A stretch of 63,316 nucleotides of DNA from the NCBI RefSeq assembly GCF_001194135.2, contig NC_068995.1:51160159-51223474 (forward strand). Reading direction: 5' to 3'. Source of the DNA: Octopus bimaculoides (lineage: Eukaryota). Positions within the stretch are counted from its first letter, which is position 1, and every line of letters begins with the position of its first letter. Positions 326 to 51,053 of this stretch are shown piece by piece. The notes under the pieces are model-generated. The model was given only the letters and a program-made list of their open reading frames with translations. It was not told the origin of the DNA and did not search any database. Both the position numbers and the translations under genes were made by a program.

Positions 326-548
326 CTAATATAGATAATCTAGCTCTGTATGAATGAACTGTTTCAGTCTCTCGAGATACTGTCCATAAAGTTCAACATC
401 GTTATGGCCTGCACCTTCTACCCACAAGGGTTCCACTGCTCTCGGACAGCGTTCATATATAGCAAGGCCATGTGAGAAATCAATCACCTCATCATCGGTG
501 CCATGGATGACTAAAACTGGAGATGAGATCTTTGGAACTTTGTCGATG
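326..548 (-). CDS. ABHD17: ABHD17 last coding exon (223 nt incl. TAG)
   Basis: Long polypyrimidine tract then CCAG|C ATC GAC AAA. AG+C makes Ser216 and joins exon 1 in frame. Encodes IHGTDDEVI (Asp235) and GAGHND (His264). Spliced product is 289 aa with a complete Ser-Asp-His triad. Confidence 0.97.
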
Positions 549-1200
549 CTGGAAAGAAAAAAAGAAAAGAAAAGAAAAAGAGGATTAAAACAATGGATTA
601 CTTTGAAAATTAGAGAACATTTCAATACATAAAAACAAATATATACAGTGGTACATTTTAAGATAAATATCATCACCATCATTATTTAAAGTTCGTCATC
701 CATGCTGGCCATGAGTTGAAAATGGTTAGACAGGATCCAATAAGCCAGAAGACTTGTTGGATCCTGATATAGGAGCTACACACACACATATTTTACAACA
801 TTTTAAAATATGTTAATAAAAGTTTTCTCCAGTTTTTTAAATAACCAAATATTTGTAGAGTAGGTGAGGTGTATGTGAACATAATTTTAGCTGACTTGTG
901 TCATGTTTTAACTTTCCTCTTTCAAATATATTGACAGCATCAACATGGCAAATTGCAATCTGTCACAAGAAATGAAAAGCACACTGTACCTGTGGCTCTA
1001 GTTACCCAGCCACAGTGATTTGGAGATCACCAGTTTCAATGTGCCTACATGAGTTCTGTGACCCAGAGAAAGAAACAGTCTCAATGGTGAGGTGTTGTTA
1101 GAACTGAGTTTGTCAAGTAGGTTCAGGATATCAGCAATAACAACTCCAGTGGGATCATGATGACCATCACTGAGCAGATCAAAGTGACAGAGTCAACAAT

Positions 1201-1420
1201 CAAAAGAAGGGCCAGTTCAGGTCCAGCAAAACCTAGCTGGGGCAACCAGTAAGTCTGGTCAAAGTACTTGTTGAAGAAGTTGAAGCCCTTTGAGAAACCT
1301 GCAATGATCTTCTATGAGAAGAACTTTGACAAGACCAGAAGGTAGACAGGAGTGACAGGGACAAGTAGCTCTTTGCAGACCCCCAAGGAGTTGCTCACAA
1401 CAAAGCACACTGGGTTCCTA
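1201..1420 (+). pseudogene. Degenerate Tc1/mariner-superfamily (maT/DD37D-like) transposase fragment
   Basis: With frameshifts reads RRGQF...KYLLKKLKPFEKPAMIFYEKNFD(Q)DQKVDRS.DK*LFADPKELLTTKHTGF, resembling the recalled maT-type RRGQF...FSDEKNFDQDQKVNRRNDRWL...TKFP block. Confidence 0.55.
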
Positions 1421-2430
1421 TTGTCTCTGAAGGAAAGTCTGTTATCATACACTTGCTATACAACAACACAACTAAAACCCATACAATCACTACAAGTGCA
1501 AACCCTCTTCACAACATCCGATGATCTGCCATGGTCGTTTCTTCATTTGGACTGACGTCGCTAACCACTTAACAAAAGATCAGAAAAGACTTCAGCTCTG
1601 ACAAATTACTAACTTTCTAGAAGCTCAAATGTAACACAATAATTTACAGTAAAAGAGCCTCTAAACGGTAACCCAATCTGCTAAAAATAACACCGCAAAT
1701 CTCTCTCAAATCAGACTGTCTTAAAAAATGCATATTACATGGTTCCACTTTGTCTGAAATAGAATATGGGATGATCACAGCTGGAATGGCTTTCATCAGA
1801 TATTTGTTTAGTTAAAATTGACCTGAGGTTAACATCTATGCAATGGTGGAATTGGCACACACAAATACCCAGGGTCCTATAAAGACAGACAGTGTCCAAA
1901 GGTCAAGAGTGCTGACCTTTCTCCCCTATCTAATAAATAAATAAATAAAGATACTATATATTCCATATAAGGTCATAGATTGAGGAAGACAAATGACAGT
2001 TACAATAACATTCTGGTGAAATAATAAAATCATATTTATACAAGAACCCCTCACCCACCATAATAAGAATTGAAGCTGATTAAAATGGCCAGAGAGTCTT
2101 AAGACAGCAAAAACTAATTACCAACACATCCCCTGCTTAGTTTCATGTTTAGCTTGATACAACAATAACATGGTGATGAAAAACTAGTTGCTGGTTAGTG
2201 ACCTTTGAGTCATAACTTTTTTTTTATTAATTTACAAGCCGTCTAATGAAAACTACAGTTAAATTTTCATAAAATACAGGAAATATCCCAAACCATTTTT
2301 TAGATAAGGTAATCAGAGGAAGAAGGGAGGCAATGCTCATGGCCCTTTCAAGTTTTCCAGGACTGAGGAGATTAATTTTCATCTTGTACAACTGACCCCA
2401 GAATGCTCAGACCCACCTGGAGATCAGACC

Positions 2431-2865
2431 CTGTCAACAAATACAGAAGTCAGGATCTTTAACACAAATGTGAAAATGGTTCTGCTATATGCATGTGAAA
2501 CATGATAAATCACAAAGTTCTCTAACAATAAACTCCAACATTTGTAAACAAATGTGTCTGGAACAACCTTTGGGTGAGATGGCAAGATAGACTCACAAAG
2601 TCTTGTGGGAGCATTAGAACTAGCAACCTATCAAAAGCCAGATCAAGAGGAGAAAATGGGGTTGGCTGGGACACACCTTATGGAAACCGGTTTCCAACAT
2701 TAAAACTACCAATAGACAACCCCAAAGAAGAAAGAAGTATAGTAGACCAGGCAACTACACCTGGGACAGCTGCAATCCATTGCCAAAACTCGAAGTAGAA
2801 CGAGGTCTCTTAATGTTGCCCAATGCTCCACATGGAGTTATGGATGCTAAATAATGATGATGATA
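2431..2865 (+). mobile_element. Degenerate RTE-clade LINE 3' fragment (family distinct from the abundant RTE below)
   Basis: LSTNTEVRIFNTNVKMVLLYACET* and IKRRKWGWLGHTL are typical RTE ORF C-terminal motifs; stops and frameshifts; short (ATG)n tail. Confidence 0.75.
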
Positions 2866-4424
2866 AGAGAATGCAATTGATTCCTTTCTTAGGGTTCAAC
2901 AACCATAGCTAGACAGGAAGATTTGGCGTGAGAAATGCTGCTAGAGTGATGTAATCCTGGTGCATGGGAGGACTGTTGACTGAACTCAATTTAAGCAGGA
3001 TCATTTACCATAGATAATTGTATGGCTTTTGGGAGGATATATGCTAGAGTTTACAATTTAAAAAAAATCTATTCATGGTGTTAAATAATTGACAAATATG
3101 CCTCCGACAATATAACAATTAGTTTATCTCAGATTTTAACTGTGGGCTGATATGGACTCAGTTCATCAAATTAATAAAAGAATCACAAGAAAAAAAAAAA
3201 GGAAGGAAAAGAAACCAAAGTTATTTCTCATTAAGCTTTTTCTAGAATGTAGTTAAAACAGTGTAATTAGGACACCATTTGAAATCCCACCACTTTACGT
3301 CTATATATATATTAAGTTTATGTTGTACAATATAGAACAACTCAAAATGTTATGTCTTAATGTTATTGCTGACCATACCATACTGGTCACTTGTGCTCTT
3401 GGAATACTAAGAATGGAAGAAAAAATGCTATTTACTAATTAATAGTTCATAACTCAATTGTGAATAAGAAAACTTAAATCTAGCTTGGTTTTCTTGCTAA
3501 AGAAGTATAACTGAAATGCAAATATAGAATGCAGTGTTTTTGGATCCTGCAAAGTGTAAGTGGGCACCCAAAAGTAAAATATTTGGAGTCTCAGTTTACT
3601 TTTTGCTATGCTCTCAAAATGAAACAGGAAGCTGCATGTGATGTGGTAGTGAGAGTCACTCCTATATTGAATAGTTTTTACAAATTTTATCATTGAATGT
3701 TAAATATTACGTGTAGCTGTCTCAAGGCTGTTGTTAATTAGACTGGTTATCAACTCAGCTCTTGAGTTGTACAAGAGGAAACAATTCAAAGACTATAAAA
3801 GTGAAAAAATGCTGGAAAGGTAATGTCTTTTATGAAGGAGACAGAAGATTAGAGATGCATTATATTGGACATGATGCATATGAACACTGCGCCCTTAATT
3901 CAAGTAATGTCCTAAATACACTGTTTATCCACATAATGAAAGAAGAGCCATGCGAAATAGCCTTGTTTTCTTTTCATAGGTATGAGAGACATGTAAAGTA
4001 ATATGCTTTTTGCTCTACGTTTATTACAGGATTACAATTTATGACTTAAGCAGTTCATAGTATTAAACTACTTGGTGAGCATGAGCCAAGCAGAAAACTG
4101 CTGCATGAGCTGCCAGAAATAGCAGCCAAACTTTTCACAAACCCTGTCTACCAACTTTAAAAAATGGTACATTGAATAATGTAGTCCAGACACACAGATA
4201 CACTGTTTAAGAGAGACAGAGAGAAGCTTGAATGTTTTCATTGTAGGTTTGACTTGATCAAGGCTGAAAACAATAACTTAATTGGTACAAATTACAAACA
4301 ACTGAATGATGTGAAAATACTCATGGAGATTAATATTACTTTTAATAATGTTACTTAACCTCCTCACTCCTCTTTACAATCCTTATCTCATAGTTTGATT
4401 TACTCAACTGTGTCACTGCCTGGT

Positions 4425-4640
4425 TGTAACCTTATCTCTATCTCAGAACTGGTCAGTGGATTGTGACCTTATCTCTACCTCAGAACTGGTCAGTGGATTG
4501 TGACCTTACCTCTACCACAGAACTGGTCAGTGGATTGTGACCTTATCTCTACCACAGAACTGGTCAGTGGATTGTAACCTTATCTCTACCTCAGAACTGG
4601 TCAGTAGATTGTAACCTTATCTCTACCTCAGAACTGGTCA
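4425..4640. repeat. Minisatellite, 37-bp unit x about 5.8
   Basis: TGT(A/G)ACCTTATCTCTACCTCAGAACTGGTCAGTGGAT starting at 4425, 4462, 4499, 4536, 4573 and 4610 (partial); no spacers. Confidence 0.95.
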
Positions 4641-5985
4641 TTCTGTAAAAATGATTAATAGTTACTAGGTCACAGTTTCGGGAATGCAATGTTATTTAGT
4701 ATTAGAAATTTAAGACCTTTGGTCAAGTAGTCCAATACCCCAAACACATAGCTATCACTTTCAAATTAAAGTTTCAAGTATCAGTTTTCAGGTAAGAGTT
4801 TTGAATTTGGTTCAGTTTTACTGCCACAGCTTTGCATTTGCTCAACGTATATTAGCCCTGTTCATTTTATTCTCACTGAAAATAAAGACCATGTATGCTT
4901 CAATGGTTTGCATTAAGTAGGTTATCTGTCTGCAAAAACTTGTTTCACATTTCAAGTGAATCTCCCCAAATCTGAAATTTTCTCAGAAATCAAATACAGA
5001 ATACTAAAAATAGAACACATACTGTTCTTGAGTTTATGGTTTACTTTCTTCATGCTGATACGAATTAGTTAAGATACTTGAAGTGCTTCTTATGATCTAC
5101 GGATCTGACTGATCTTAAATGCATGTTAAAATTCATATTGCATTAAAATAAGGCAGCATTAGTTACGTTTATAAAACAAGCAAGACTTTATACTTATCAA
5201 AAATTAATCTCGGTGACTATTCTTTAAATGTTTTTACTTATTTTGTCCCAGCCTAAATTAATCTTAGTGATAGAAATGAAAGAAGCTAATTTATATTGTG
5301 CTTCTCAGAGAAGAAACAGAAGCAAAATTAAAACTCGTTTTAATCAAGCCCAAATTTAAGTCATACTGATTACTTAAGAACAAAGCCTAACATTTGAAGA
5401 AAGGAAACAAATTTGTCATACTCATTCATTTCTCAAATGGCTTCACTTTGTTATGAATTTACTTATTTAAAATTTGCCATCCAGTTCTATCAATAATTAT
5501 TAATAACATTCAGAGATTTGCTTTAATTATTGCTAAAAGGAGATAACAAATTATGAACATATCGAGTAATGATGCAGTTATTTCTAACAAATGTCTGCGA
5601 TTAGTGTCAGTCTGAAATCATTAATGGAAAAATAGCACTAATGAATCACTAGAGATATATGATAGTACCAAATAAATTTGAACTTATATTTCCAGTCTAC
5701 AGTATTTCCAGACTACTGTAGACAAGTAGTTGAGCTAAGTTACTGAAGAACTAAAAAGAAAAAAAAAAAAAANNNNNNNNNNAAAAAAAAAAAAAAAAAA
5801 AAACTTTATATGATATATATTTTAAAGAAAAAATTATTGAAAACAATTAAACAAAATTTGATTTAACGAGATCATGCCACAAAAATCAATGAGGTTTCTT
5901 AAACTGTCTACCTCTATACTACAGAAACGTAAATATAATTGCGGTGTTTCAATTTTTAGAAAGCCATAAATTCAATGATGTAAAA

Positions 5986-6661
5986 TATGGTCATGTGTTA
6001 TGTCTGGATGAGGACAGCTGAGTGAGGAAGTGCTATACCCTAACAGTGGAAGGAACCTGTGGAAGAGGTAAACCCAGGAAGACATGGGATGAGGTGGTGA
6101 AGTATGACCTTTGAACGTTGGGCCTCACAGGGGCAATGACAAGAGACCAAGACCTTTGGAGATATGCTCTGATTGAGAAGACCCAGCAAGTAAAGTGAGA
6201 TCGCAGCCATGGCTGATGCCAGTGTTGCATGTCCAGCCTAAAAGTACCCTTGATGCATCGGGCGATATGATATGCTTGAGAAAACCTGTTGAGTCAAGTA
6301 AAACCAAAATTGTAGCTGTGGCCAGTGCTCCCTGACTGGCTCCCTTGCCAGTGGCATGTAAAAAGCACCATCTGAACATGGTCGATGTCAGTGTTGCCTG
6401 ACTGGCTCCCATGCCAGTGGCATGTAAAAAGCACTATCCGAATGTCACCGATGCCAGGGCCGCCTGACTGGCTCCTGTGCCAGTGGCATGTAAAAAGCAT
6501 GCACTAAACTCTTGGAGTGGTTGGCATTAGAAAGGGCATCCAGCTGTAGAAACATTGCCAGATCAGATTGGAACCTGGTGCAGCCAGTGGCTTTCCAGAC
6601 CTCAGTCAAACCATCCAACCCATGCCAGCATGGAAAACGGATGTTAAATGATGATGATGAA
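5986..6661 (+). mobile_element. 5'-truncated RTE-clade LINE: ORF C-terminus, 3' UTR and (ATG)n tail
   Basis: 5986-6198 reads YGHVLCLDEDS*VRKCYTLTVEGTCGRGKPRKTWDEVVKYDL*TLGLTGAMTRDQDLWRY. The UTR has three 66-bp repeats (6321, 6387, 6453) and ends ...GTTAAATGATGATGATGA. Confidence 0.85.
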
Positions 6662-8026
6662 AGACATGATTAACAGAAAGGTAAGTTTTTAAAATCATTT
6701 TGAAAACATGGCGAGGTGACAAAGCACATTTATGTGAAACCAGTTGACTCAATCATACAGAATATTTTATAAGATTATCAGAGAATGTGAATTTTTGTTT
6801 TCTTTTTAGAAAATAATAATTAAAAAATGAGTTTACTGAACTTTCTGATTTCAAAATGAAACTATCAGAGTGCAAAATAAAATCTTGGTGAAACTGAGAT
6901 GAAAAACAAAGTCTCTAACTAAAAAATGGCTATCACAGGAGTTATTCTGAAGACTGTTGTTTGGTAGAAAGAAATATAGTAAACTTGTTATTTACATATT
7001 AGAGGCATGGATTGTCATGAAATCATGTGCTGAAACAGATGTTGTGTCTTGGGAAGGTCATTTTGCAAATAAAGCCACATGCACTGGCTCTATTCCATTG
7101 TTTACTTTAATTCAGCTAAAATCAGATAAACTAATTAACCAATGAACTGACTGCTTGATTAAAAAATTTGGCAATGAAAGGATTCTGACAAACAAACTGA
7201 CTGATTGAGCAACTGGTTAATCAATTTGTTAACTGGTTAAATAGTTGACTAATAATGGGAAAAAGTGCATGTGCTTTATTGGCTAGGTGATTGTCCCACA
7301 ATTGTAATACAATCCTGTTGAAAATGATTAAATAATATTTTGTTTTCTGATAAGACAGTTATAATGTGTTTGCTTAATGAAATCTGTTCTGAGTAGAGAT
7401 AACTATGGCTTCTCCACATCGTAAGTAAAATCACAACTATATCATAAAAGTAATATCAACAGACTTAAGTCACAAAGAGAAGACCAAAGAGATCAACAAA
7501 ATATCTTCTGTCCTTTTTTTTCTCTCCATCTTTCAACAGTAGCTGGCTCACAAATGTTAAATAGACAAATTTCCAGACTGACAGGCACAAACCTGGAAGC
7601 ACACATGTATAATAGATTTATAATATATAAATATGCAGAATGTGCAGAAGGATTAAATATGAATAGAGAATGAGAAAGACAATTGATTTTCTTGTTCCCA
7701 GATACTCAAACACAAAATATAATCAGATTCATTGCCATAAGCAAAAACATTTAGAATAGGCAATAAAATCAAACAAGAAAACAATTTTGAATGGATTTCA
7801 GATACATATATATAATATAAATATGTCTGAAGAAATTATGTGAAATGGCAATGCTATATCTTGAAGACCTGCAATGCAGCTATATTCAGAATATCCCTTT
7901 TCAACAATATTTTTGCATCATGATATCCCATTGAAAGTCATGCACTAGCACCGCTTTTAGTGTCTTGACCTTGGTCAATGATAGCCAAAACAAGAACATG
8001 TATCAATGAAATCAAATATGAAAAAT

Positions 8027-8154
8027 GGCAGGTGCAGACGTTGCTGGTTGTGTGGTAAGTAGTTTGCTTCACAACCACATGGTTTTGGTTTCAGTCCCAC
8101 TATATGACACCTTGGGCTGACCAAAGCCTTATGGCTTGATTTGATGGCATCCAG

Positions 8155-8187
<33 letters not shown>
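8027..8187 (+). mobile_element. SINE family A 5' half (tRNA-like head), ending in (TA)n
   Basis: TGTGTGGTAAGTAG...GTTTCAGTCCCACT...CACCTTGGG; matches the copy at 31855 with internal deletions. Confidence 0.7.
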
Positions 8188-8189
<2 letters not shown>

Positions 8190-8931
8190 CATCATCATTG
8201 TTTAGTGTCTGTTTTCCATGCAGGCATGGGTTGGATGGTTTGAATGGGGACTGGCAAGTCAGTAGGCTGCACCAGGCTCCAGTCTAATCCGGCAAGGTTT
8301 CTACTGCAGGATGCACTTCCTAATGCCAACTACTCTGAGAGTGTAGTAGGTGCCTTTAATGTGCTACTGGCACAGGAGCCAGTCAAACAGTACTGGCATC
8401 GACCATGGTGCTTTTTATTTGCCATCGGCATAGGAGGCAGTCGGCAGGGACTGGTTTCGGACACGTTCAGATGGTGTTTTTTTATATGTGCCACCGGCAC
8501 GGGGAGCCAGTCAAGCAGCACTGCATCAGCTACAACTACAATTTTCATTTTGATTTGATTGATTTTACTTGACTCAATAGGTCTTCTCAAGCGCAGTATA
8601 TCACCCGACAATTCAAGGGTACTTTTAAATGGGCTGATTATGCACTTTACTTGCTGGGTCATTGGCTACAATTCAATTTGACTTGACTCAACAGGTCTCC
8701 TCAAGCACAGCATATTGCCTGATGATTCAAGGGTACTTTTAAATGGCCTGGTTATGCGACACTGGTATCAGCCATGGCTATGATCTCACTTTACTTGCCG
8801 TGTCTTCTCAATCACAGCATATCTCCAAAGGTCTTGGTCTCATGTCATTGCCTCTGTGAGGCCTAATGTTTGAAGGTCATGCTTCACCACCTCATTCCAT
8901 GTCTTCCGGGTCTCCCTCTTCCACAGGTTCC
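8188..8931 (-). mobile_element. 5'-truncated RTE LINE copy with internal duplication, inverted relative to 5986-6661
   Basis: Reverse complement gives GTCGRGRPGRHG-/TWNEVVKHDL...WRYA coding tail and the same UTR. A segment of about 115 bp is duplicated at about 8520-8760. The tail abuts (TA)n. Confidence 0.85.
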
Positions 8932-9198
8932 ATCCATGAACTATATATATATATGTCCACAGCTAGCCACCTACACTTTTCTCTGCAAAATAGGGGTAGT
9001 TTATCCTGTTCAGGCTATATTATTAGCATTATTCTGCGATTGAGAATTTAAAATCACTTCTTTAACTTTCTAAAAGACATCTCAACGCTTCTAAATGCAA
9101 ACTTCGTTTGTTTATTTACGTTTGTCGTAATTTGAATTTAATATATATGTGTGTGTGTGTGTATATATACTCACACACACATGTATATATATATATAT

Positions 9199-9305
9199 GC
9201 AAGGCTATATGGTTAAAAAGTTTGCTTCCCAAGCACATGGTCTTGGGTTCAGATCCACTGCATAGTACCTTGGGCAAGTGTCTTCTCTTATAGCTCCAGG
9301 TCACC
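9199..9305 (+). mobile_element. SINE family A head fragment
   Basis: TGGTTAAAAAGTTTGCTTCCC...GGGTTCAGATCC...ACCTTGGGCAAGTGTCTTCT. Confidence 0.7.
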
Positions 9306-11979
9306 AGATTAAAAATTCAGGTGACTAAAAAACAAAATTATTTCATCAGTTTACACTAAAAACCTTAATATCCATACATACAACAGAGAAAGGTGAATGC
9401 TCACAGAAATACACATTATCAGTCGTGAAACGCACAACTGAGAAAAGCCCCAACAATCTCCTCCAATATATACATCAAAACCGAAAGAAATTAATGGAAT
9501 AACAATCAAAGATGCATATACAGACAAGTTAAAACTAATCTATTAGAACTATAGAGAATTCAATACAGAACCAGCAATATACCACTGAACAAACTTCAGA
9601 TGACCGATGTAATTTACAAATATGTTGCAAAAATTGCAACATAATACAGGACAAAGCAGACATGGAAATGTTTTATTAGAATGCCAACTCAGAGTGGGTT
9701 ATAGTTGACAACATAGCTATCTTAAATCAAATTCACCACTAAAAGATCAGTCATTGAAGCTAAAATAATAACAAAATTTAGACAAATATCACATCTTAGT
9801 AACAAAGGTAGCCAAGTCCTGATAGCAAGAAAGAAGAAAAACAACAAAAACACTACTATTAATGATAAATTTCAAATTTGTAGATATGTATAAGGTAATT
9901 AATTCACAACTGCCAAAATAACAATAAAAGATAACATATGCCACTCAGAACTACTTCTGAGGTCCAGAAATATTGAAGGAGTTGGGAACAGTTGCACTTT
10001 TAATAATATTTGTCTGTAAAAGCAATTGCCCATATCAATACATGTGTGCAAATAAATGATAACATTGTTGTCCAGCAGATGGGCGACATATTGAGTTTGC
10101 TATTGGGTTTATAGCACTTTTGAGGCACAATGACTATAAAGTTAAGATAGTGGACTAATGACCATAAGTTACAATTACAAAATCTTACAGCCATGGTGGT
10201 ACTTCAGTCAAGGAAGAAGTGAATAGGAATACTGATTTAGTTCTTGGGTAATGTTCAAGCAATCAAAATATCACATGCACACACATTTAAAATTGTGTTG
10301 CATAAAAATGCACACTGGTTTTGGTAATGTGAAATGATTACAAGCATTCGGGTTATGCAAATTCCTTTAGATGGTAATCTCAAATAGTATGTTAAAGACA
10401 TTTGGTAATCCTAGTTTCAAATCTAAATACATAAAGCTAAAAAACAGAAATCCTGATTTAATATATTTAGGAGAATCTAAAATTACCTACTCTCTGAGGG
10501 TTATAAATCCTGTCTGTGTTTATGTGCTATGCTGAAGACACTGAGTCCAGATAAAATGTTAACTTGGAATAACAATCAGCTTTGGCATGTCTATATTGTT
10601 AACATTGATAGCACCTCAACTATTCATGGGTTTATATATACACACAAACACACGTGCATATACATGTAGCAGCAAATTTGAAATGGAATGTGTAACCCGA
10701 GACAGATATTGACAAACTGGCATATGATGGTATGTGATACTTAAAATAATAATGGTTGCTACAAGTACCTTGAGCCATCTTTAGGCCAATAAAGGAACAA
10801 AAAAAAAAATTAATTAATGGGGTGAACAACTGAAAGCAAAACAGAGTAAAAGGAAGTTAGATATGGTGTTCATTATACAGTATTATGAAGATTTTACAGT
10901 TTTACAGAAAATGCTATAGAAGAGTGTTTGGAGATAGAAATAGGTAGCAAAGATCGGAGAGAAGTTATTTCTGTAAATATTGGGGAATACAATCCTTTTC
11001 TTTATAGGCACAAAATTGAAATTTTGAGGATAGGGGATAGTCATTTAAACATATCAGTTATATAATAAAAGCATTAATTTCCAAGTCCCAACATAACACT
11101 CAGATTGTTTTGCAGTAACTCCCATCACAAGTTTCCACAGAGGCCACCACTTAATCCGCAAGACAAACTTGAACAGTCTGGACATCAAACTAGAATGCAG
11201 TCTACACAGAGACTATATCCTAGGTAAATAACCATGGTCACAGAAGAACAATGTATAGCACTGACCCAAATAAGGTTCTGACCTATCCATTATATTGATT
11301 CAGGAGTTGATGTTGAACATTCAATGAACAAGTTCCATACTATGTCGCTTTGTAAACATATCTAAACCAAGGCAATTCAACAACTTCTCAACACTTACAA
11401 CATTATCTTAAGAATGATCTCCAAACAATGATAAGGTATTTAGAAAAGCGAAGCTTATCTGTTCTATCTTACATCCTTTCCTTTTGCTAGTTTCTGTCCT
11501 TGCACTGACAATACAAGGGCACTGCTTGCAAGCGTGTAGTCGATTGTGGACCCCAGTGTTGATTTGTACTTATTTTATATCAATTCTGAAGGAGGAAAGT
11601 GAATTCAAATTCCAAGCTACAAAAAAAGCATTTTTAGTGATATAGAACTTTTAAAAATGAATTACAGAATCTTTAATGTATTCATTCCTAAATTTTCTAA
11701 GCATGAACTAACATCCCTGATTAGCTGAATGTAGTTTTCAGACATCGATAATCTCTAACTGTTTTTAGATACTAGACTGCAGCAACACAGGAGCACTGTC
11801 TTGTCTTCAAAGGCTTAGTAGACTGTTCAGGTCCCAGTATGGGTATACTGGTACTTACTGTATTGACCTCAGGCGAATCAAAGGCAAAGTGTGGAATCTT
11901 AACTCAGACTATAGAGGGATGCAACCAAATAACACAAGGTATTTTTTCTGATGCTCTACTGATTCTGCTATCCACCACC

Positions 11980-40908: not shown

Positions 40909-41039
40909 ATGATGTATATGTGTGTCTGTAACATGGCTCTTAGTTCAATTCTACTGCATGGTACCTTGAACAAATACCTTCTGTCATAGCCTCAGGTTAA
41001 CAAATATCTTCTGAGTAGAATTGTGTCGATCAGAACTTT

Positions 41040-41190: not shown

Positions 41191-41199
41191 GATAGTGAT

Positions 41200-41530
41200 G
41201 GTGGTAACATATTTTCTGGTGGTGGTGGTGATGATAATGTGGGTGGTGGGGATAAATGATGTTGGTTGTAGTAATGAAGTTTGTGATAGTGGAAGTGATA
41301 TTGATGTTAGGTAATAAGCATGTATGTGGTGGTGGTGAGAGTAATGATATTGGTGGTGTTGGCGGTAATAATGGTGTTTATGGTCTTGATAGTGGTGAGA
41401 AGGTTGTGTAATGGTGCTGGTGGTGTTTATGTTGTTGATAATGGTAGTGGCGTTGTAATAATGGCAATTATACAAGTGGCTGTCTTTGGCAGTGAAGATG
41501 GCTATGTTTGTTGTTGTGATGATGTAGGAT
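41200..41530. repeat. Low-complexity GGT/GAT/GTA trinucleotide tract
   Basis: Read directly; source of spurious His/Thr- and Val-rich ORFs. Confidence 0.85.
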
Positions 41531-42384
41531 GATTCTGTGCAAATACCAGGATTCTCTTTTAAAAAAAAATTATATCTTATACCATTCTATTTAATGACTA
41601 ACGTCTGTATTTCTACCCCCGCCCCACTACCACCACCACCACCAGTACCAACACTATCAATACCACCCTCATCATTACTTCAACAGACAAACTGGTTTGC
41701 TTGCAATGTCCGCCATTATGGAATCTGTGGAATTTACTTGTCTTGCTCAGGAAACTTGTCTTTTAATCAGTTCAATCATGCTTGCTTCCTTGTTCGTTGA
41801 GATTTGATTTAAACAAACCCAACCTACCCCCACCGGCACCCTCACGCCTCCCCTCCTACCCCTGCCACTGCTATTGACAGTGCACCACCCTTTGTTCTGT
41901 TTTCTCGAAATGGAAGCACATGGGGACGAATATGTAGATGCATTCGCTACACACAGCGGGTAAATATAGGCATTCATGTACATACACAAATATATGTATA
42001 CATCCGCATACATGTATTATATATACAGACGCATATAGATACATGTACTCATGCAAACACACACACACACACTACTGTCACAATTTGTAATAGTATGAAA
42101 TGCTTATTTAAATGGCGAAATCGTTAAGCTTTTAGTGTAGATTTTTCTTAAACATCCTGTTGTAATGCTTTGATGTTTCTCAAGAGATTTACGTCATTGT
42201 ATTGTATTGTAAACCTCTCGGTTACTTCTGTTGTGTGGCTCATGGCTAGTGATGTTGTGAAACTCTTGGTTGGTGGTGCTGTGATGTTTTTCAAAAGATT
42301 TCCTTACTGTTGTGGTATGATGAGCATCTTGATTAGTTTCATTGTGGGGAACATCTTGATTGGTTTTGTTGTGAAGGAGCACTC

Positions 42385-42590
42385 CGTCAGTTACGACGAC
42401 GCGGGTCCCAGCTGATACGATCAACGGAACAGCTTGCTCATGAAATTAACATTCAAGTGGCTGAGCACTCCACAGACACGTGTACCCTTAACGTAGTTCT
42501 CAGGAAGATTCAGCGTGACACAGAGTGTGACAAAGCCGGCCCTTTGAAATACAGGTACAACTCATTTTTGCCAGCTGAGTGAACTGGAGC
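42385..42590 (-). mobile_element. Fragment of a third SINE-like interspersed repeat
   Basis: CAAGTGGCTGAGCACTCCACAGACACGTGTACCCTTAACGTAGTTCTC...TTTTGCCAGCTGAGTGAACTGGAGC; CpG-rich; recognised from memory only. Confidence 0.45.
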
Positions 42591-42599
42591 AGCCCAATG

Positions 42600-43500
42600 G
42601 GCAATAAACTATGCTTAAGAAGACCTGTTGAGTCAAATGAAATCATTGTTGAATGACCGTTGAATAAACTATGCTTGAGAAGACCTGTTGAGTCAAATGA
42701 AATCATTGTTGAATGACCGTNNNNNNNNNNNNNNNNNNNNNNNNNNNNNNNNNNNNNNNNNNNNNNNNNNNNNNNNNNNNNNNNNNNNNNNNNNNNNNNN
42801 NNNNNNNNNNNNNNNNNNNNNNNNNNNNNNNNNNNNNNNNNNNNNNNNNNNNNNNNNNNNNNNNNNNNNNNNNNNNNNNNNNNNNNNNNNNNNNNNNNNN
42901 NNNNNNNNNNNNNNNNNNNNNNNNNNNNNNNNNNNNNNNNNNNNNNNNNNNNNNNNNNNNNNNNNNNNNNNNNNNNNNNNNNNNNNNNNNNNNNNNNNNN
43001 NNNNNNNNNNNNNNNNNNNNNNNNNNNNNNNNNNNNNNNNNNNNNNNNNNNNNNNNNNNNNNNNNNNNNNNNNNNNNNNNNNNNNNNNNNNNNNNNNNNN
43101 NNNNNNNNNNNNNNNNNNNNNNNNNNNNNNNNNNNNNNNNNNNNNNNNNNNNNNNNNNNNNNNNNNNNNNNNNNNNNNNNNNNNNNNNNNNNNNNNNNNN
43201 NNNNNNNNNNNNNNNNNNNNNNNNNNNNNNNNNNNNNNNNNNNNNNNNNNNNNNNNNNNNNNNNNNNNNNNNNNNNNNNNNNNNNNNNNNNNNNNNNNNN
43301 NNNNNNNNNNNNNNNNNNNNNNNNNNNNNNNNNNNNNNNNNNNNNNNNNNNNNNNNNNNNNNNNNNNNNNNNNNNNNNNNNNNNNNNNNNNNNNNNNNNC
43401 TTGAGAAGACCTGTTGAGTCAAATGAAATCATTGTTGAATGACCGTTGAATAAACTATGCTTGAGAAGACCTGTTGAGTCAAGTGAAGTCATTGTTGTGG
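42600..43500. repeat. 60-bp minisatellite spanning an assembly gap
   Basis: TGAATAAACTATGCTTGAGAAGACCTGTTGAGTCAAATGAAATCATTGTTGAATGACCGT; two copies left of the gap and about 1.7 right of it. Confidence 0.9.
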
Positions 43501-43875
43501 CCGATGCCAGTACCGCATGACTGGCTCCTGTGCCAGTAACACATAAAAAGCACTATTCAAGCATGGTTGATGCCAGTGCCGCCTGACTGGCTCCTGTGCT
43601 GGTGGCACATAAAAAGCACCATTCGAGTGTGGTCGTTGCCAGTGCTGCCTGACTGGCTCCCATGTTGGTGGCATGTAAAAAGCACCATTTGAGCATGGTC
43701 GATGTCAGTACCGCCCGACTGGTCCTCATGCCAGTGGCACTTAAAAAGCACCCACTACACTCTTGGAGTGGTTGGCATTAGGAAGGGCATCCAGCTGTAG
43801 AAACCTTGCCAGTCCTCAGTCAAACTGTCCAACCCATGCTAGCATGGAAAGCAGACGTTAAACGACGATGATGAT
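43500..43875 (+). mobile_element. RTE 3' UTR with four 66-bp units; tail next to (TA)n
   Basis: Units start at 43506, 43572, 43638 and 43704; ends GACGTTAAACGACGATGATGAT. Confidence 0.85.
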
Positions 43876-45695
43876 TCTATATATATATATAGAGAGAGGG
43901 AGAGTGGGGGGGGGGAATTTTGAAGAAGGTTGAAGCAAGCCGGGTATAGGCGGTCATCAAGTAGTGCTCACATAAATCTGAAACTTAAATTACGACTCTT
44001 TTGTCCTGGGTAGGTAGTGCTGTTGTGGGTGGTTGGCTATAAAAACGATTTTCATTGAGCAGGAAGTAAAAATGTCATAAACAAATTTAGGTTTGAGGAG
44101 TGTATTTACATGCAAGGTTGTGAATAAAAATTAACAAAAGGAATGATGTAATAGTCTTATCTTTACTCACCCATACAAACACTCATACACACACACGCAC
44201 GCACACACATACATACATACACACATACACGTGTGTATGTTAAAGAGCTTTTGTGTTTAAACACGAACACTGCATCTGTTAAAAGGTATCTAGCCAGATG
44301 CCAAAATATAGAAGTTACAAATCTTTGTTAACAATGTATCTTGGAGTGAATTCAGCTATAAATAATAGCTTTATAAGAACCCTTTGGATAGAAAAGAAGG
44401 CGGGAAGCTGCCTGTGGAACTTGAACCAAATTTGCTCCAAGATTCTTTTCACATATTTCTTGATTCTTCTCCTTAATAGAAGATACAATTTCTTTTCAAG
44501 ACCTTCTCATAGAAAACATCTCTTAGTTGCATGTTCAAAAACAAACTGTTATTGTTTGTTCTTTGGACAGCCCTGGGATGCATTACAATCAAATGCCTTC
44601 CATTGATGACCATTCCATTTACCCTTTTTCCGAATTAAAGTGCGTAGAGGACTACATTCAATCCAATTTGATCTTCTTAAGACGGTCAGGTGGAATTTTT
44701 ACTGCTGTCTCTATTGAGTTGAGCACCATTTATAGAGGTTCCTATGGTTTACTTTATATAAAAAAAAACTCTCATTTATGGGGGGCCTTGTACGTGGTCT
44801 CTTGACTTACTAGAAGTGGCAGTTAAACCTCCTTCAACTCGCACTTAATCATCTTTAAAAAAAGGAAGGACACGCATTACATGATAATGTAGTCTTAAGA
44901 AAACCCCTTACCCCAAAAATGTTGGGATGGGCATAGCTTGTAATGCCTTTGTTTATAGTCTGCACACACCAGGGTTTACCTGGAACTAAATAATAGTAGC
45001 TTAGTCGATTATTCTATTTAATAATGATTTAGTTGAATCTGAGAGACACTTCCGTTCTAGCTCGGTTCCCTTCCCTGACACCTACTCATGTTGTTACCTT
45101 GTGGACTGCACGTACTGCATAAAATCTCCTTTCTTGTATATAAAATCAATAGAGACAAGATATTTGATGAGGTGAAATATATCATTCCTGTCCCTCCCCC
45201 AATCATTCTTTTGCAGTGATTCATTCCTTGATATGTTTGTCATCATCTCACTCTTGGTGTCATAAGTGACATAACTCCTTTCCCTTTGCCCGCTTTGCCC
45301 CCTTTTGCCTTTTTAACCCATTTCTGATCCCAGCCCAGTAACGTCTTCAAGTTGGATGTCTTCAAAACATTTTTTGCTTTTTCACAGAATTAATGTATTT
45401 ATTTATCAATTTAACAATTTGCCGATATGTTTAGGTTATTTTTCTGTACCCTCAGTTAATTATTGTTGTTATTGTAGTTCTGCTCTGGATCGGTCTTTGT
45501 TTAGCAAACTTATGATCAAAGGCTTTCCAGCCATGACCATCCTGTCTTGTGGTTTTAGATACAGTACAGAGTGTTTCAAAGTGGGTTCAATGAAAATAAA
45601 TTCGAGGGTTCAGCAACATAAGATGTCTTTGAATGAAATTTAGTAATTTATTGTATTAAACAAAGGCTGTTCACCACTTTCAGAATAAATGAGGT

Positions 45696-46020
45696 ACAGG
45701 CCTGGTTGTATGGTTAAGAAGTTTGTTTCTCAACCATGTGGTTTTGGGTTCAGTTCAACCATGTGGTTTTGGGTTCAGTTCCACCATGTGGCACCTTGGA
45801 CAAGTGTTTTTTTTTTGCTGTTGCCCCGGGCTAACGAAAGCCTTGTGAGCAGATTTTGTGGATAGAAACTGAAAAGCTCATCATATATCTTTGTGTGTGT
45901 GGATGTTGCAGTTTCTTTCTACAGAATCCGATCACAAGGCTTTAATTGGCTTAGGGCTGTAGAAGAAGACACTTGCCTAAGCTGTTGTGCAGTGGGATTG
46001 AACCTGAGACCACATAGTTG
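45696..46020. mobile_element. Two SINE family A 5' halves in tail-to-tail inverted orientation
   Basis: Plus copy 45696-45890 has a duplication of about 24 bp; minus copy about 45915-46020. Confidence 0.7.
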
Positions 46021-46176
46021 AATATTCAGTTGTTCAGTCAACTGGACTACTTTCACATTGAAAGGCAGGTACAATACCTCAGGTAATGTGGTTCCATATA
46101 AGGTTCTGTCTCCCTAGTTTTACTCACACATCTAAGGTTGACCTAAGGCCATGATAAAAAATACCAGGACAGCATG

Positions 46177-47101
46177 TTCGAAGGGTGTTCATTAAAGATT
46201 TCCCCTGACCCACTACTGGTTTATTGCAGGAAACAGAACTTGTGCAGGTATAATCACACATGTCCGTACGTGTCATTTTGTAAATTGCAGCTTTCTTCTG
46301 TATTCGTTTGTCTTTTATGGCTGCTGAAGTGGACTAAGCTGTTATAATGGAGGCAGTTGAATGCAGATCAGTGAACAGGTTCTTATACTTGAAAGGTCAT
46401 ACACCAAAAGAGACTTTCGATGAGATGAAAGAAGTTTGTGGTGACAATGCACCATCATATGATATAATCAAACACTGGCATCGCCAGTTCAAATGGGGCT
46501 GGACATTGGTGGAAACTGTTCCTATTCCCGTATGATCACATTCCACCATTGATGAGGATGCCATCCATAAAGTGGAAGCTGCCATTTTGGAGGATAACCA
46601 CAAAACTATTCGGCAACTAGCCCAAGAAGTGAAGATAAGTGTAGGGTCCGTGGAAAAAATCATTTATGACCATTTGCAAATGTGGAAGTTGTCTGCATGA
46701 TGGATTCCCCAGATGCTCACACCTTTTCGGAAGCAGGAATGAGTCACTTGCTCCCAGGTTCATTTGGCAGTGTGCCAAGAAAACGAGGAGGACTTTATTG
46801 GCAGAATTATCACACAGGATGAAACATGGGTCCATTGCTATGATCCTGAGATTAAAGTCCAGTCGAGGCAATAGAAGCATGATAACTCACCACCTCCAAA
46901 GAAGGCTCATGTCCAACCCTCAGCAGGCAAGGTGATGCTCAAAAACTTTTGGGACTAGAATGGAGTAGGGACGATGGATTTTTTGGCAAAGGACACCACA
47001 ATTAATGGGGCATATTATGCTTCTCTGCTGCAGAAATTGTGGGATGCTATCAAAACATGACCAAAGGAGTTCACCTCCTCCAAGACAATGCCCCAGTTCA
47101 C
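46177..47101 (+). pseudogene. Mariner (Tc1/mariner) transposon relic, 3'-truncated
   Basis: One frame from ATG 46347 across several stops: YLKGHTPKETFDEMKEVCGDNAPSYDIIKHWHRQFK...*WIPQMLT...ITQDETWVHCYDPE...PSAGKVM...INGAYYASLL, then frameshift to LLQDNAPVH. The third catalytic Asp and right TIR are absent; TIR-like start near 46177. Confidence 0.9.
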
Positions 47102-47792
47102 CCTGTGTGATATTTGTTCCCTCTGAATTCCACAGACAATCCCCTTGTCAGTTTTGGCTAGTTAGAAAGAAATGCAGTGAGCCTTCTGATTGGCCTGTTG
47201 GTAACCGGTAACCAATGGCAACAGATTCACCACTTCCATATCTATTTGTTAGCATTGTTCCAATCCACGCATATTTATTCACACAAACATGTAACATAAT
47301 GCATAAACTCTAGCTGTTGCTTATCTCTTCTCTGCCACCACCACCACCACCACCACAGCATAGCCCACCTCTCCTTCTCACATATGACTAATTCAACAAC
47401 AACAATAACGAGGTCTTTCATGTTTTTGTTATGCATTATTTTTATGATGTTTTGGTATTGTAATATTCTATTCTGTTCTGTTCTGTGATGCTATTATCAT
47501 CAATTAAATATTAATTTTTTTTTCTTCTGGATATGTTTATATATATATATTTTTTTTGAAATGCATTTTATTGCATTTTTATAGAAATGTATTTTNNNNN
47601 NNNNNNNNNNNNNNNNNNNNNNNNNNNNNNNNNNNNNNNNNNNNNNNNNNNNNNNNNNNNNNNNNNNNNNNNNNNNNNNNNNNNNNNNNNNNNNNNNNNN
47701 NNNNNNNNNNNNNNNNNNNNNNNNNNNNNNNNNNNNNNNNNNNNNNNNNNNNNNNNNNNNNNNNNNNNNNNNNNNNNNNNNNNNNNNNNNNN

Positions 47793-47938
47793 NGCAACTG
47801 GTACTTAATTTATTGACTCCTGTAAAGATGAAAAGTAAAATCAACCTTGGTGGAATTTGAACTCAGTACATAAAGACAAATAAAATGTTGCTACGCATTT
47901 CGCCCGACGTGCTAATGTTTGTGCCAGCTCACCGCCTT
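47793..47938 (-). mobile_element. SINE family B 5' part
   Basis: Reverse complement matches 30709-30850. Confidence 0.75.
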
Positions 47939-48094
47939 GGCACCGATATAATATTCTTTCTACGCTAGGCACAGGGTAGGGGAAATGAAGTGCTTGTGAA
48001 GTACTGGGGTGAGGGTGGGGGTGGCCAGTGGTATCGACTAAGCAGCTTCCTTCAAAATTGTTAGCCTTGTGCCTAAATTGCTGCATCTTTTATC

Positions 48095-48460
48095 TTCTCT
48101 TTGTTTCAGGCATTAGACTGCGGCCATGCTGGGGCACCACATTGGAGAATTTTTAATCAAATGAATCAACCCCAGCACTTATAGTTTTTTGTAAGCGTGG
48201 TAATTATTCTATTGGTCTCTTTTGCCAAATCGCTAAGTTACGGGGACATAAACACACCGACAGTGGTTGTCGAGCAGTGACAGCGCGGACAAAAACACAC
48301 CGACAGTGGTTGTCAAGCAGTGACAGCAGGGGCAAACACAAACATACACACACACACAATGGGCTTCTTTCAGTTTCCATCTACCAAATCCACTCGTAAG
48401 ATGATGGTAGAGTTGAGGCTTTAGTAGAAGACACCTGCCCAAGGTGCCATGCAGTGGAAG
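48095..48460 (-). mobile_element. SINE family A, near full length, with internal duplication of about 40 bp
   Basis: AAACACACCGACAGTGGTTGTC(G/A)AGCAGTGACAGC occurs twice. Confidence 0.8.
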
Positions 48461-48489
48461 TGAACAAGTTGAAGTAGTAGAGTGGCACC

Positions 48490-48725
48490 AGCACCATTGC
48501 TTTTTATGGTGCCTCATAAAAAGCACTGGTGATGGTGCCACGTAAGACTCACCCAGTAAACTGTGTAAAGTGGTTGGTGCTAGGAAGGGCATCCAGCTGT
48601 AGAAACCAAGCCAAAACAGACTATGGAATCTGGTGTGGCCCCTGGCCTTGTCAGTTCCTATCAAGCAGTCCAACCCATGCCAGCATGGAAAATGGATATT
48701 AACTGGGGATATTGATGATGATGAT
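48490..48725 (+). mobile_element. RTE-related 3' UTR copy
   Basis: GTGGTTGGTGCTAGGAAGGGCATCCAGCTGTAGAAA...CCAACCCATGCCAGCATGGAAA...(GAT)n. Confidence 0.8.
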
Positions 48726-49691
48726 GTAGACTGCATTCTGATTTCAAATCCTGGCAGGGTTGAGAAACCGTTAGGCATGTCCTGGGGTTAATTCATTTTT
48801 GACTATCCCCTGCTCTCCTCCCTTTGTATCTCTCTCAAAAGTTTTTGGCCATGTTCCAATGTTAAAAATTCATTATTGCCATTATTGATTTCTTTGTTTA
48901 TATTTAATTTTTTTTTTTTAATCATAGAAACCAACAGCTCAGATTTATAAGGAGAGGGCATGGTGAGACAGTGACATTCATGCTGATGTATGTGAAGTAA
49001 AGTATGTTATGTATCGATGGTGGTGGTGGTGGTGGTATTGGCAGTTATGTTCATGTTGGGCTTGAATGAATAATAATTCAATATGAGTTTTAACAATGCT
49101 TAAAAACAAAATTCTCTTTTGTCCTTTTATTTAATTAAATTTCTTCTCTATTACATGGCTATATAGGAAAAAAAACTAAATTTATGATTATGGAAGATTT
49201 TAAATGACGTTTTTATTGATTCCTGCCATTTTTTGTATTTGTTTTTATGTTTCTTTTTTTTCTTCTCTCCTTAAATAAAATTATTAACCAAATGACCTAA
49301 TAACACAGATTAAACTGTAAGTACATAGAAATTGCTTTCAAATTTTGAAATAAGGCCATCAATTTTCAAGGAAGGAGTCAAGTCGATTACACCAGCCCCA
49401 GTACGCAAACCCTGCCAAAAAAAAACACAGTAGTCTGGGGTAATTTTCTACCTGCCCAGTTCCTGTCAACCATGTATGCATAGAAGACTGACTTTAAACA
49501 ATGATGATACACACACACACACACACAGTTGAAATTTACAAAAAAAAAAACAAACAAACAAAACAAAAGACGAAGACAGGTGTGTAAACAACAAACAGAT
49601 GTATTAGTTTAACGCTTGGGAAGTGAGAAAGTCTTTTACGTTTCGAGCCTATGCTCTTCGACAGAAAGGAACACAGAAATAAACAGGGAGA

Positions 49692-49764
<73 letters not shown>

Positions 49765-50349
49765 CATAGATCCACACAAACATATGACATCTCTTTCTTC
49801 TGCCTGACAATTCTCAATTCCAATGTTGGCCATTAGTGCCAAATTTTAGCTACAGTACCAAGATTTATTATGGCATCAAAGTTTTGATTTATATTTCGTT
49901 ATTAAAATTGGTTCCATAATAAATTGCCTGTGTAGAAAATCATAACATTGTCAACTAATGTGTCTCTGTGTAGTTATTTTTTTTTTTTGCCGAGAGAGAG
50001 GAGGTAACTTATTGCTATCATGCGTTTTAAGGTGGTGAGATAGGGCAGTTCTTCACATAACTAATGTTATTCATTCATTGATGACTTTTTTGTTTACAAT
50101 TAATTTTTGCATTATTACATTGACGACTTGGACTCACTAAAGTCGTGTATGTGTGTATGCGCACACATCCATGTGTGTGTATGTGTGCACGAAGATGCAT
50201 GTGTGTGTGTGTATTTCATGGACAGTTGTGTCTTTGAATATATGTATCGTATCGTGTGAATTTTAAGCCACAGGAAATAAATCAAAACTATAGAAACAGA
50301 ATGACAAATAAATGCTTCTTTATTCAATCAATATTTACCTTTTACAAGA

Positions 50350-50690
50350 TAGGTGCAGGCATAGCTATGTGGTTAAGCTTACTGTTGGACCATATAGACT
50401 TGGGTTAAGTCTTGCTGCATGAGAAAATACTTGAGAAAGTATCTTCTGCTGTAGCTCCAGGTTAACGAAAGTGGATTTGGCTGATGAAACTGGAAGAAGC
50501 CTGTTGTGTATATGTGTGTATGTATTTGTGTTACCCTTGACCCCAGTACTCAACTGGTACTTATTTTGCTGACCACCAAAAGGACAAAAGGCACAGTAGA
50601 CCTTGGCAGAAATTGAACTCAGAAAGTAAAGAACCAGAAGCAATCCTGCTAATCATTTTCTCCAGCACACTAACGATTCAGCTGGATTCT
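50350..50690. mobile_element. Degenerate SINE A head (+) joined to a SINE B fragment (-)
   Basis: Shared motifs with 31855 and 30709. Confidence 0.55.
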
Positions 50691-50891
50691 TACTAAAGTA
50701 ATGTAATCAAATATGCATAGAAAATACACTCAAACATATGACTGCTATTTCTAGTGGATCAAGCGATCATATCAAGCTCCCTCATCTGCTTAAGAGATGG
50801 TGTGCTGCTGTCTACTTTTTTTTCTTATAGCATCTTTAGTTTGATTCTATATTTATTTAATTGTTTTTTCTTTTTCTTTTCTAATTCCCAG

Positions 50892-51017
50892 TTCTGGCTG
50901 TTCTAAAAAGGCTATCAAAAGAGCTTACCATTTGCTGTGTCAGCAATGTGCTGAAAACAGACAAATATGTCCAAAATGTGCTAAAAACCATGTTGCGACG
51001 GAGACAAACGATGAAGC
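50892..51017 (+). CDS. C9orf85: C9orf85 second coding exon (126 nt, phase 2-2); not shown in the ORF track
   Basis: Polypyrimidine tract plus CTAAT then CCCAG|T. TG+T gives Cys, then SGCSKKAIKRAYHLLCQQCAENRQICPKCAKNHVATETNDE, completing four CxxC pairs. Ends GAA GC|GTAAGT, or reads through to TAA at 51019-51021. Confidence 0.92.
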
Positions 51018-51053
51018 GTAAGTATAGAATTATTTTTACATTTCTACATTTAA

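Follow-up and report, generated by a model that had tools for sequence, protein, structure and literature searches.

A divergent ABHD17–C9orf85 gene pair in Octopus bimaculoides and its probable bilaterian ancestry

Two unrelated genes, ABHD17 and C9orf85, lie head to head on opposite strands of a 63,316 nt stretch of Octopus bimaculoides DNA (NC_068995.1, positions 51,160,159 to 51,223,474; hereafter the window), with exactly 522 bp between their start codons. Comparison with other genomes makes it likely that they form an inherited divergent pair of bilaterian age, and that both genes would be transcribed outwards from one short, gap-free, TATA-less promoter region that is not depleted in CpG and carries sites of the cyclic AMP response element (CRE) and ETS types. 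For ancestry as such, namely that the pair was inherited from the bilaterian ancestor, the comparison argues more strongly, and we regard it as highly probable. The same genes stand next to each other in two distant bilaterian clades, Spiralia (Octopus, Lingula, a metagenome contig and Sinanodonta) and Vertebrata (Conger, pig and chicken).

Divergent pairs of deep conservation serve in reconstructions of ancestral genome organisation and as arguments that cis-regulation constrains gene order. ABHD17–C9orf85 is a clean and easily scored case, as it consists of two single-copy, highly conserved genes separated by a spacer of approximately 0.5 kb. Its survival in Octopus, together with many independent breaks elsewhere, amounts to a natural experiment on the strength of bidirectional-promoter constraint. 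In addition, the CRE found at a conserved position at ABHD17 from cnidarians to octopus suggests, in a form open to testing, how a depalmitoylase with Ras and synaptic proteins as substrates may be regulated.

Results and discussion

Structure of the octopus gene pair

ABHD17 occupies the reverse strand and has two coding exons. Exon 1 (26141..25495, 647 nt) is an open reading frame for amino acids 1–215 plus 2 nt that holds the N-terminal cysteine cluster CCLFCCPPC and the GQSIG nucleophile motif, and it ends at a GTAAGT splice donor. The intron (549..25494; 24,946 bp) carries three gaps of 10 N each at simple repeats, flanked by poly-A or microsatellites, and leads through a polypyrimidine/AG acceptor upstream of position 548 into exon 2 (326..548, reverse strand), which encodes amino acids 216–289 and the TAG stop codon (328–326). 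Every residue of the 289-amino-acid spliced product agrees with the annotated ABHD17B of O. bimaculoides (XP_014772469.1), O. vulgaris and O. sinensis, and splicing over the long intron is thereby confirmed independently. The intron position (amino acids 215/216) is common to octopus and Nematostella, and exon 1 terminates at the same residue in octopus, Lingula and the metagenome contig L021 described below.

Members of the ABHD17 family have a GxSxG nucleophile, acidic and histidine motifs, and an N-terminal cysteine cluster that serves as a palmitoylation and membrane anchor. The octopus protein has GQSIG at residue 168, HGTDDEVID at 231, GAGHND at 261 and cysteines at 10, 11, 14, 15 and 18. 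Its Pfam matches, all above cut-off, are to Hydrolase_4 (E = 1.2e-11), Abhydrolase_6, Abhydrolase_1 and Peptidase_S9, indicating an alpha/beta-hydrolase fold, and it shares 80–91% identity with ABHD17 proteins from cnidarians to mammals. By domain matches, identity and motifs, then, the gene is a member of the ABHD17 (FAM108) family of palmitoyl-protein hydrolases. The protein is equally close to vertebrate 17B and 17C (80–83%) and shares 83% identity with that of Nematostella; judged by these values it is a pro-orthologue of vertebrate 17A/B/C, and not of 17B specifically.

C9orf85 occupies the forward strand. Coding exon 1 (26664..26872) begins with the ATG at 26664, encodes amino acids 1–69 plus 2 nt and ends at a GTAAGC donor. 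It is followed by intron 1 (26873..50891; 24,019 bp, with five gaps totalling 1,309 N), a CAG acceptor before 50892, and coding exon 2 (50892..51017), which encodes amino acids 70–111, including three of the four CxxC pairs, up to a GTAAGT donor at 51018. The product matches Pfam DUF2039 (PF10217) with 106.6 bits (cut-off 27; E = 8e-31) over profile positions 2–88 of 89. All eight invariant cysteines are intact, forming the four CxxC pairs CDPC (45), CSGC (70), CQQC (86) and CPKC (96), and the WKIKYKKYKPL core and all invariant columns of the homologue alignment are retained. On these motifs the protein is of the four-CxxC zinc-ribbon type. The phase-2 intron at the exon 1–exon 2 junction also occurs in Lingula, Lineus, Patiria, Crassostrea and a millipede, representing five other phyla, and a C9orf85 protein of Argonauta runs across the same junction; both observations support the joining of the two octopus exons.

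All 11 N runs of the window are intronic or lie downstream: three in the ABHD17 intron (30 N), five in C9orf85 intron 1 (1,309 N; the gaps at 42721–43399, 679 N, and 47596–47793, 198 N, are among them) and three further downstream. No exon or splice site touches a gap, and neither does the 522 bp spacer. Therefore, no reading frame rests on a gap, and only the two intron lengths are estimates. A preliminary description of this stretch, made from its letters alone, had reported divergent genes with 522 bp between their ATG codons and introns of about 24–25 kb. The gene models bear out both statements, the first of them on gap-free sequence.

Occurrence of the pair in other animals

To establish where the two genes are neighbours, we considered the genomic context of C9orf85 or ABHD17 homologues with flanks of up to 10 kb. 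Every locus was searched by tblastn with the octopus proteins, so that uncalled genes were not overlooked. The pair was scored as absent when no partner lay within 10 kb, and the upstream flanks of all loci scored in this way are free of gaps.

In the brachiopod Lingula anatina, ABHD17 exon 1 (88% identity over amino acids 1–215) is on the strand opposite to C9orf85, and 422 bp separate it from the C9orf85 ATG. This exon is unannotated because the contig stops 2.8 kb further on, and its placement was verified in the sequence, as was that of the following two cases. On metagenome contig L021, ABHD17 (86% identity) is head to head with C9orf85 at 539 bp. The ABHD17 sequence of this contig is nearest to those of molluscs and annelids (85–87%) and its C9orf85 exon 1 is nearest to those of beetles (approximately 68%); its source is probably a spiralian. 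In the eel Conger conger, ABHD17B lies on the opposite strand 542 bp from C9orf85, and the best matches of this gene are all to ABHD17B/FAM108B1. In the unionid mussel Sinanodonta woodiana, C9orf85 (ACJMK2_043301/KAL3865957) and ABHD17 (ACJMK2_043302/KAL3865958) are adjacent at the level of annotation on the same 143-Mb chromosome.

Published maps add two further vertebrates. On pig chromosome 1 the gene order is CEMIP2, ABHD17B, C9orf85, GDA (PMC8871947), and in chicken both ABHD17B and C9orf85 fall within one 6-kb interval of chromosome Z (PMC10954189). The earlier proposal that the octopus arrangement mirrors that of human ABHD17B and C9orf85 is thus upheld at the vertebrate level by eel, pig and chicken. 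The 5′–5′ orientation and the spacing (522, 422, 539 and 542 bp) were seen directly in octopus, Lingula, L021 and Conger, respectively, while Sinanodonta, pig and chicken inform on adjacency.

Lingula has two C9orf85 entries with greater than 90% mutual identity on separate contigs (545 kb and 806 kb), which may represent haplotigs or the outcome of a recent duplication. The arrangement described here is that of the first entry.

Promoter features of the intergenic region

The region between the two start codons (26142..26663) is a putative shared bidirectional promoter of 522 bp that is gap-free and contains no repeat found elsewhere in the window. Its ratio of observed to expected CpG is 1.27, compared with 0.38 for the window as a whole. 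In a 1-kb profile the spacer falls within the core (24001..28000; ratio 1.05–1.14) of the only domain of the window that is not depleted in CpG. This domain has a shoulder from 21 kb, and outside domain and shoulder the ratio is 0.08–0.66. These ratios point to one domain of the germline-unmethylated type centred on both first exons and the spacer. No match to a TATA element was found in the spacer.

A palindromic CRE, TGACGTCA, is located at 26327..26334, where it precedes the ABHD17 ATG by 193 bp and the C9orf85 ATG by 337 bp. No second copy occurs in the window, for which the chance expectation is 0.32. A motif scan of the spacer also revealed a half-CRE (26503..26507) within GTGACGTT and, 83–93 bp upstream of the C9orf85 ATG, a half-CRE with an ETS-like core (CTTCCG) in CGTCACTTCCG (26571..26581). 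ACTTCC(G) motifs are present in the intergenic regions of Lingula and L021 as well.

A full CRE lies upstream of the ABHD17 ATG by 193 bp in octopus, 159 bp in Lingula, 171 bp in L021 and 171 bp in Nematostella (Lingula L001 position 3566, L021 position 2555 and Nematostella L022/L023 position 9830). Outside these promoters the motif occurs about once per 20–25 kb in approximately 355 kb of comparison sequence. Given this frequency, its presence in four of four ABHD17 promoters within a 35-bp range of positions is far beyond chance. The Nematostella promoter carries the element with no C9orf85 nearby, which argues that as a promoter element the CRE belongs primarily to ABHD17. We take it to be a position-conserved motif of probable cnidarian–bilaterian, that is pre-bilaterian, age.

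C9orf85 promoters that stand apart from ABHD17 mostly have no CRE. Full elements nevertheless occur upstream of C9orf85 despite the absence of an adjacent ABHD17 in Lineus (two copies, 400–410 bp upstream; L002 9591–9608) and at metagenome locus L008 (266 bp upstream; 9735–9742). These elements may be relics of a broken ABHD17–C9orf85 pair, and they hint that C9orf85 also uses the CRE. A block of retroelement-like open reading frames (4036–8917) lies just upstream in L008.

Inheritance of the pair and its alternatives

Several observations weigh against a simple history of inheritance and a shared promoter. Within 10 kb of C9orf85 there is no ABHD17 in the nemertean Lineus, where the upstream gene is an APD1-4 RING gene and a single 29-Mb chromosome carries both ABHD17 and C9orf85; in the annelid Dimorphilus, where a homeobox gene lies upstream and ABHD17 is on another scaffold; in the crinoid Anneissia (DCP2 upstream); in the sea star Patiria (SIR2 upstream); in Crassostrea virginica (no gene called upstream); in the amphioxus Branchiostoma lanceolatum, where COMMD1 is divergent at 310 bp instead; or in the millipede Chamberlinius, where GPP34 is divergent instead. 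In Nematostella, where the search was anchored on ABHD17 as a test of pre-bilaterian origin, C9orf85 was not found within 10 kb. The pair is also missing from metagenome loci L015, L016, L019 (venerid-clam-like), L020 and L008. The metagenome scan yielded 10 C9orf85 loci, three of which are intron-less at the exon 1–exon 2 junction (cDNA-like) and two of which have approximately 100 bp of upstream sequence; one of the five informative loci, L021, has the pair. Furthermore, ABHD17 and C9orf85 do not share a chromosome or scaffold in the ladybird Coccinella and the heterobranch snails Bradybaena, Bulinus and Lymnaea. Retention among metazoans is not widespread: at least 12 named species, belonging to seven phyla, lack the pair or have the genes unlinked, and no ecdysozoan, non-vertebrate deuterostome (ambulacrarian or cephalochordate) or cnidarian instance was found among the lineages sampled. 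A single origin before the spiralian–vertebrate split therefore requires about seven independent losses. The preliminary description had called for a survey of the neighbours across lineages. That survey finds the genes divergent in Lingula, L021 and eel, and the pair absent or the genes unlinked in oyster, snails, nemertean, annelid, echinoderms, amphioxus, arthropods and cnidarian. The proposal of a bilaterian-age pair retains its support from the recurrence in Lingula, L021, Sinanodonta and vertebrates, but the pair is missing from most intermediate lineages sampled.

The evidence for a common promoter is subject to similar reservations. Intergenic conservation is confined to the (G)TGACGTCA core of 8–9 bp, which is present at ABHD17 alone in Nematostella. 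Regulatory elements in the spacer that are shared by both genes are putative, and transcription starts in the octopus spacer and bidirectional promoter activity are predictions. A spacing of a few hundred base pairs between the 5′ ends of human ABHD17B and C9orf85 is likewise assumed.

We nevertheless favour inheritance. Where the pair is missing, the gene upstream of C9orf85 varies (APD1-4, a homeobox gene, DCP2, SIR2, COMMD1, GPP34 or none), and no substitute partner recurs in any two lineages. Differing neighbours of this kind are what is expected from independent breaks of one ancestral state. In vertebrates, it would be the ABHD17B ohnologue that retained C9orf85 as its neighbour. The arrangement may comprise two tightly packed core promoters of the housekeeping type within one open, CpG-rich domain. 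A spacer of a few hundred base pairs would offer few harmless breakpoints, which could slow the loss of the pair, without preventing it, and allow its persistence in Octopus. Such persistence would combine a small-target effect with a mild effect of the shared promoter, and would involve no absolute constraint. Any shared-promoter constraint of the kind proposed from the octopus sequence is weak and easily escaped, since in the majority of the lineages sampled the two genes have come apart. The one conserved promoter motif, the CRE, belongs primarily to ABHD17.

A neutral form of the same ancestry is a possibility that we take seriously while doubting it. According to this account, the pair was inherited and survived by chance because a spacer of 400–550 bp is a tiny target for breakpoints, and the two genes have independent core promoters with no shared functional element. 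Both genes are intact and highly conserved in most of the sampled lineages that separated them, the sole conserved motif, the CRE, remains with ABHD17 in Nematostella, whose C9orf85 is located elsewhere, and C9orf85 promoters without ABHD17 mostly have no such site, all of which would be expected if nothing were shared. It is less easily reconciled with the retention of spacing and orientation in four very distant lineages, or with the full CREs that Lineus and L008 keep 266–410 bp upstream of C9orf85 after ABHD17 has gone, a hint of their use by C9orf85. Survival by chance is also hard to square with the presence of the pair in Octopus, a lineage reported to have lost or scrambled much of its ancestral microsynteny.

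Independent origin of the vertebrate and spiralian pairs, for instance by local inversions that joined genes of the same ancestral chromosome, is improbable. Loose linkage of the kind required does exist, as Lineus has both genes on one chromosome in non-adjacent positions, and the lack of an instance in the amphioxus, echinoderms, ecdysozoans and Nematostella sampled counts in favour of convergence. Against this, the two genes, out of a complement of more than 10,000, would have had to come together as direct neighbours at least twice, each time in 5′–5′ orientation and with a spacer of 420–540 bp, and this coincidence makes inheritance much the likelier explanation. No alternative upstream partner of C9orf85 has arisen in two lineages. 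Finally, it is very improbable that the distal exons (326–548 and 50892–51017) were mis-scaffolded through gaps: although the two introns contain eight gaps, five of them in that of C9orf85, and the protein collection has no octopus C9orf85 entry that would give the exon 1–exon 2 join an independent annotation, the ABHD17 splice product recurs among the annotated proteins of three Octopus species, one of them on a 78-Mb sequence, both splice junctions are at intron positions conserved in other phyla, the Argonauta C9orf85 protein crosses the same junction, and the head-to-head 5′ ends, being contiguous with the spacer and gap-free, would be unaffected in any event.

Relation to known divergent pairs and gene function

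The vertebrate ABHD17B (FAM108B1)–C9orf85 locus contains the same orthologous genes in adjacent positions, and in eel they are divergent with 5′ ends approximately 0.5 kb apart. It differs from the octopus locus in that vertebrates have three ABHD17 ohnologues, of which 17B is the partner, while octopus has a single pro-orthologue. In eel, moreover, the annotation begins ABHD17B with a short 5′ exon and places the main coding exon 4.9 kb away, and the intergenic region has a CRE-like site only, in contrast to the full octamer of octopus.

The spacer also resembles the mammalian CpG-island bidirectional promoters that carry ETS/GABP-type sites, in that it is short, TATA-less and locally enriched in CpG and has an ETS-like core and CRE sites. 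Unlike those islands, its G+C content is low (36%), so that the ‘island’ is an absence of CpG depletion and not a richness in G+C, and its bidirectional activity is putative.

Conserved ancestral microsyntenic pairs (CAMPs) are enriched in 5′–5′ orientation and in intergenic distances of less than 1 kb, with HSPD1–HSPE1 as the paradigm of a coregulated 5′–5′ class (Irimia et al., 2012; PMC3514665). ABHD17–C9orf85 resembles these pairs in consisting of unrelated genes in 5′–5′ orientation with a spacer of less than 1 kb, conserved between bilaterian superphyla. On the basis of these shared properties it fits as a further example of the known class. HSPD1–HSPE1, however, is kept in nearly all species and its products cooperate, whereas ABHD17–C9orf85 is kept in a minority of lineages and its products have no known functional relation. 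Our literature search found no description of ABHD17–C9orf85 as a conserved or bidirectional unit, the supplementary pair list of Irimia et al. (2012) being outside that search.

The sole interaction data found for human C9orf85 place it with the BRISC complex via ABRAXAS2 (hu.MAP3.0). In addition, a cap analysis of gene expression study presents the C9orf85 promoter as an example of dual initiation, and a proteomic study lists the protein among uncharacterised proteins associated with ZIP8 knockout. It had been suggested that the gene pair could link the DUF2039 protein to depalmitoylation biology. We rejected this idea, as no supporting evidence was found and the interaction data point to BRISC. 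In animals, the proximity of genes is a poor indicator of a common function, and the pair therefore gives no functional clue for DUF2039.

A possible three-gene block with TIMM44

In Lingula, Anneissia, Patiria and Chamberlinius, a TIMM44 gene (Pfam Tim44) is convergent with C9orf85, tail to tail downstream of it (L001 7326–11018, L003 14110–21588, L004 14307–21607 and L011 10915–13711). This C9orf85–TIMM44 microsynteny is represented in each of the three bilaterian superclades, and several of the lineages that keep it are without the ABHD17 pairing. A tblastx comparison of the octopus window with four Tim44 loci, which do match each other, gave no match.

The recurrence of TIMM44 as the convergent neighbour downstream of C9orf85, seen in Lingula, two echinoderms and the millipede, leads us to propose tentatively that the bilaterian ancestor had a compact block in which ABHD17 and C9orf85 were head to head and TIMM44 was tail to tail with C9orf85. 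A CRE-bearing promoter would have served the ABHD17/C9orf85 side, the placing of its CRE with respect to ABHD17 being older than the cnidarian–bilaterian split. These gene orders give the proposal a real chance of being correct, if a less than even one. If it is, Lingula alone would have the whole block, echinoderms and the millipede the TIMM44 side, and Octopus, mussel and vertebrates the ABHD17 side. The vertebrate block would have been split among ohnologous regions; we take ABHD17B and C9orf85 to be on human 9q21, and both ABHD17A and TIMM44 on 19p13. The CREs that Lineus and L008 have upstream of C9orf85 would then be relics, showing that C9orf85 transcription relies on this element too.

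The 3′ end of octopus C9orf85

The preliminary description placed the end of C9orf85 at 51021, and this is probably wrong. Reading through exon 2 to the TAA at 51019–51021 gives a product of 112 amino acids, but this codon overlaps a consensus splice donor (GC|GTAAGT) at 51018. An intron lies nine residues past the last CxxC in Lingula, Lineus, Patiria, Crassostrea and Conger, which is the place of the octopus donor. No AATAAA or ATTAAA poly(A) signal follows 51021 for approximately 2 kb, and homologues are mostly 140–250 amino acids in length (211 in Argonauta hians). Together these four observations argue that the gene very probably extends beyond 51021, which would then not be its true end.

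In homologues, the C-terminal extension (an LPERKRRxF motif and an acidic tail) is encoded by further exons. No such exon was found at 51.1–63.3 kb by tblastn with more than 90 homologues and the 211-residue Argonauta protein or by a scan for the ERKRR motif. The donor at 51018 and the length of the Argonauta protein imply additional exons, which would lie beyond the window or within gaps. A tandem array of a 21-bp unit (51048–51535; approximately 23 copies with 72% matches, or alternatively a 63-bp unit) begins 30 bp past the exon 2 donor in the presumed intron 2.

Neither the 112-residue model nor the 70-residue exon 1 reading frame of octopus C9orf85 has an Octopus entry in a collection of 15 billion proteins, where ABHD17 is present from three Octopus species. 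The nearest entry is the Argonauta hians protein of 211 residues. With its 24-kb intron, this small gene may have escaped annotation, or been annotated differently, in Octopus genomes. A profile search of the PDB with C9orf85 gave nothing under E = 0.19. The cysteine-rich region of DUF2039 (amino acids 57–108) has weak similarity to CRIPT (PF10235; E = 0.0036, under the Pfam cut-off), which may reflect a distant relationship between these two CxxC-rich families. Elsewhere, a 289-kb ENA contig (L006 10001–10378) carries an intronless C9orf85 copy of 125 amino acids with 69% identity to the octopus protein amid fragments of reverse transcriptase and RNase H. The reading frame of this copy is intact, and it is probably a processed retrocopy.

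Composition and repeats of the window

The window is AT-rich (G+C 36.6%), with many microsatellites. Both large introns had been described as full of transposons, which the sequence bears out only in part. They contain an interspersed repeat family of 200–600 bp, represented in the window by up to 12 matching copies in both orientations, which makes up 8% of one intron and 19% of the other, together with 3–4% of tandem repeats. No transposable-element protein domain was detected by Pfam in eight candidate intron reading frames, including those that by eye were similar to the tail of a long interspersed nuclear element or to mariner. Copies of the repeat family are located at 6047–6660, 8157–8643, 36342–36575, 40285–40713, 43400–43891 and 56044–56285, among others. 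The family has recurrent strings in pseudo-reading frames, such as ‘WMPFLTPT’ and ‘DALPNANY’, has no match in Rfam or Pfam, and appears similar to short interspersed nuclear elements. Rfam gave zero matches over the whole window. At the 3′ end of the window (60933–62826), long low-complexity pseudo-reading frames rich in His, Thr, Pro and Gln surround a gap of 959 N, and as far as can be seen this segment is simple-sequence DNA rather than a gene.

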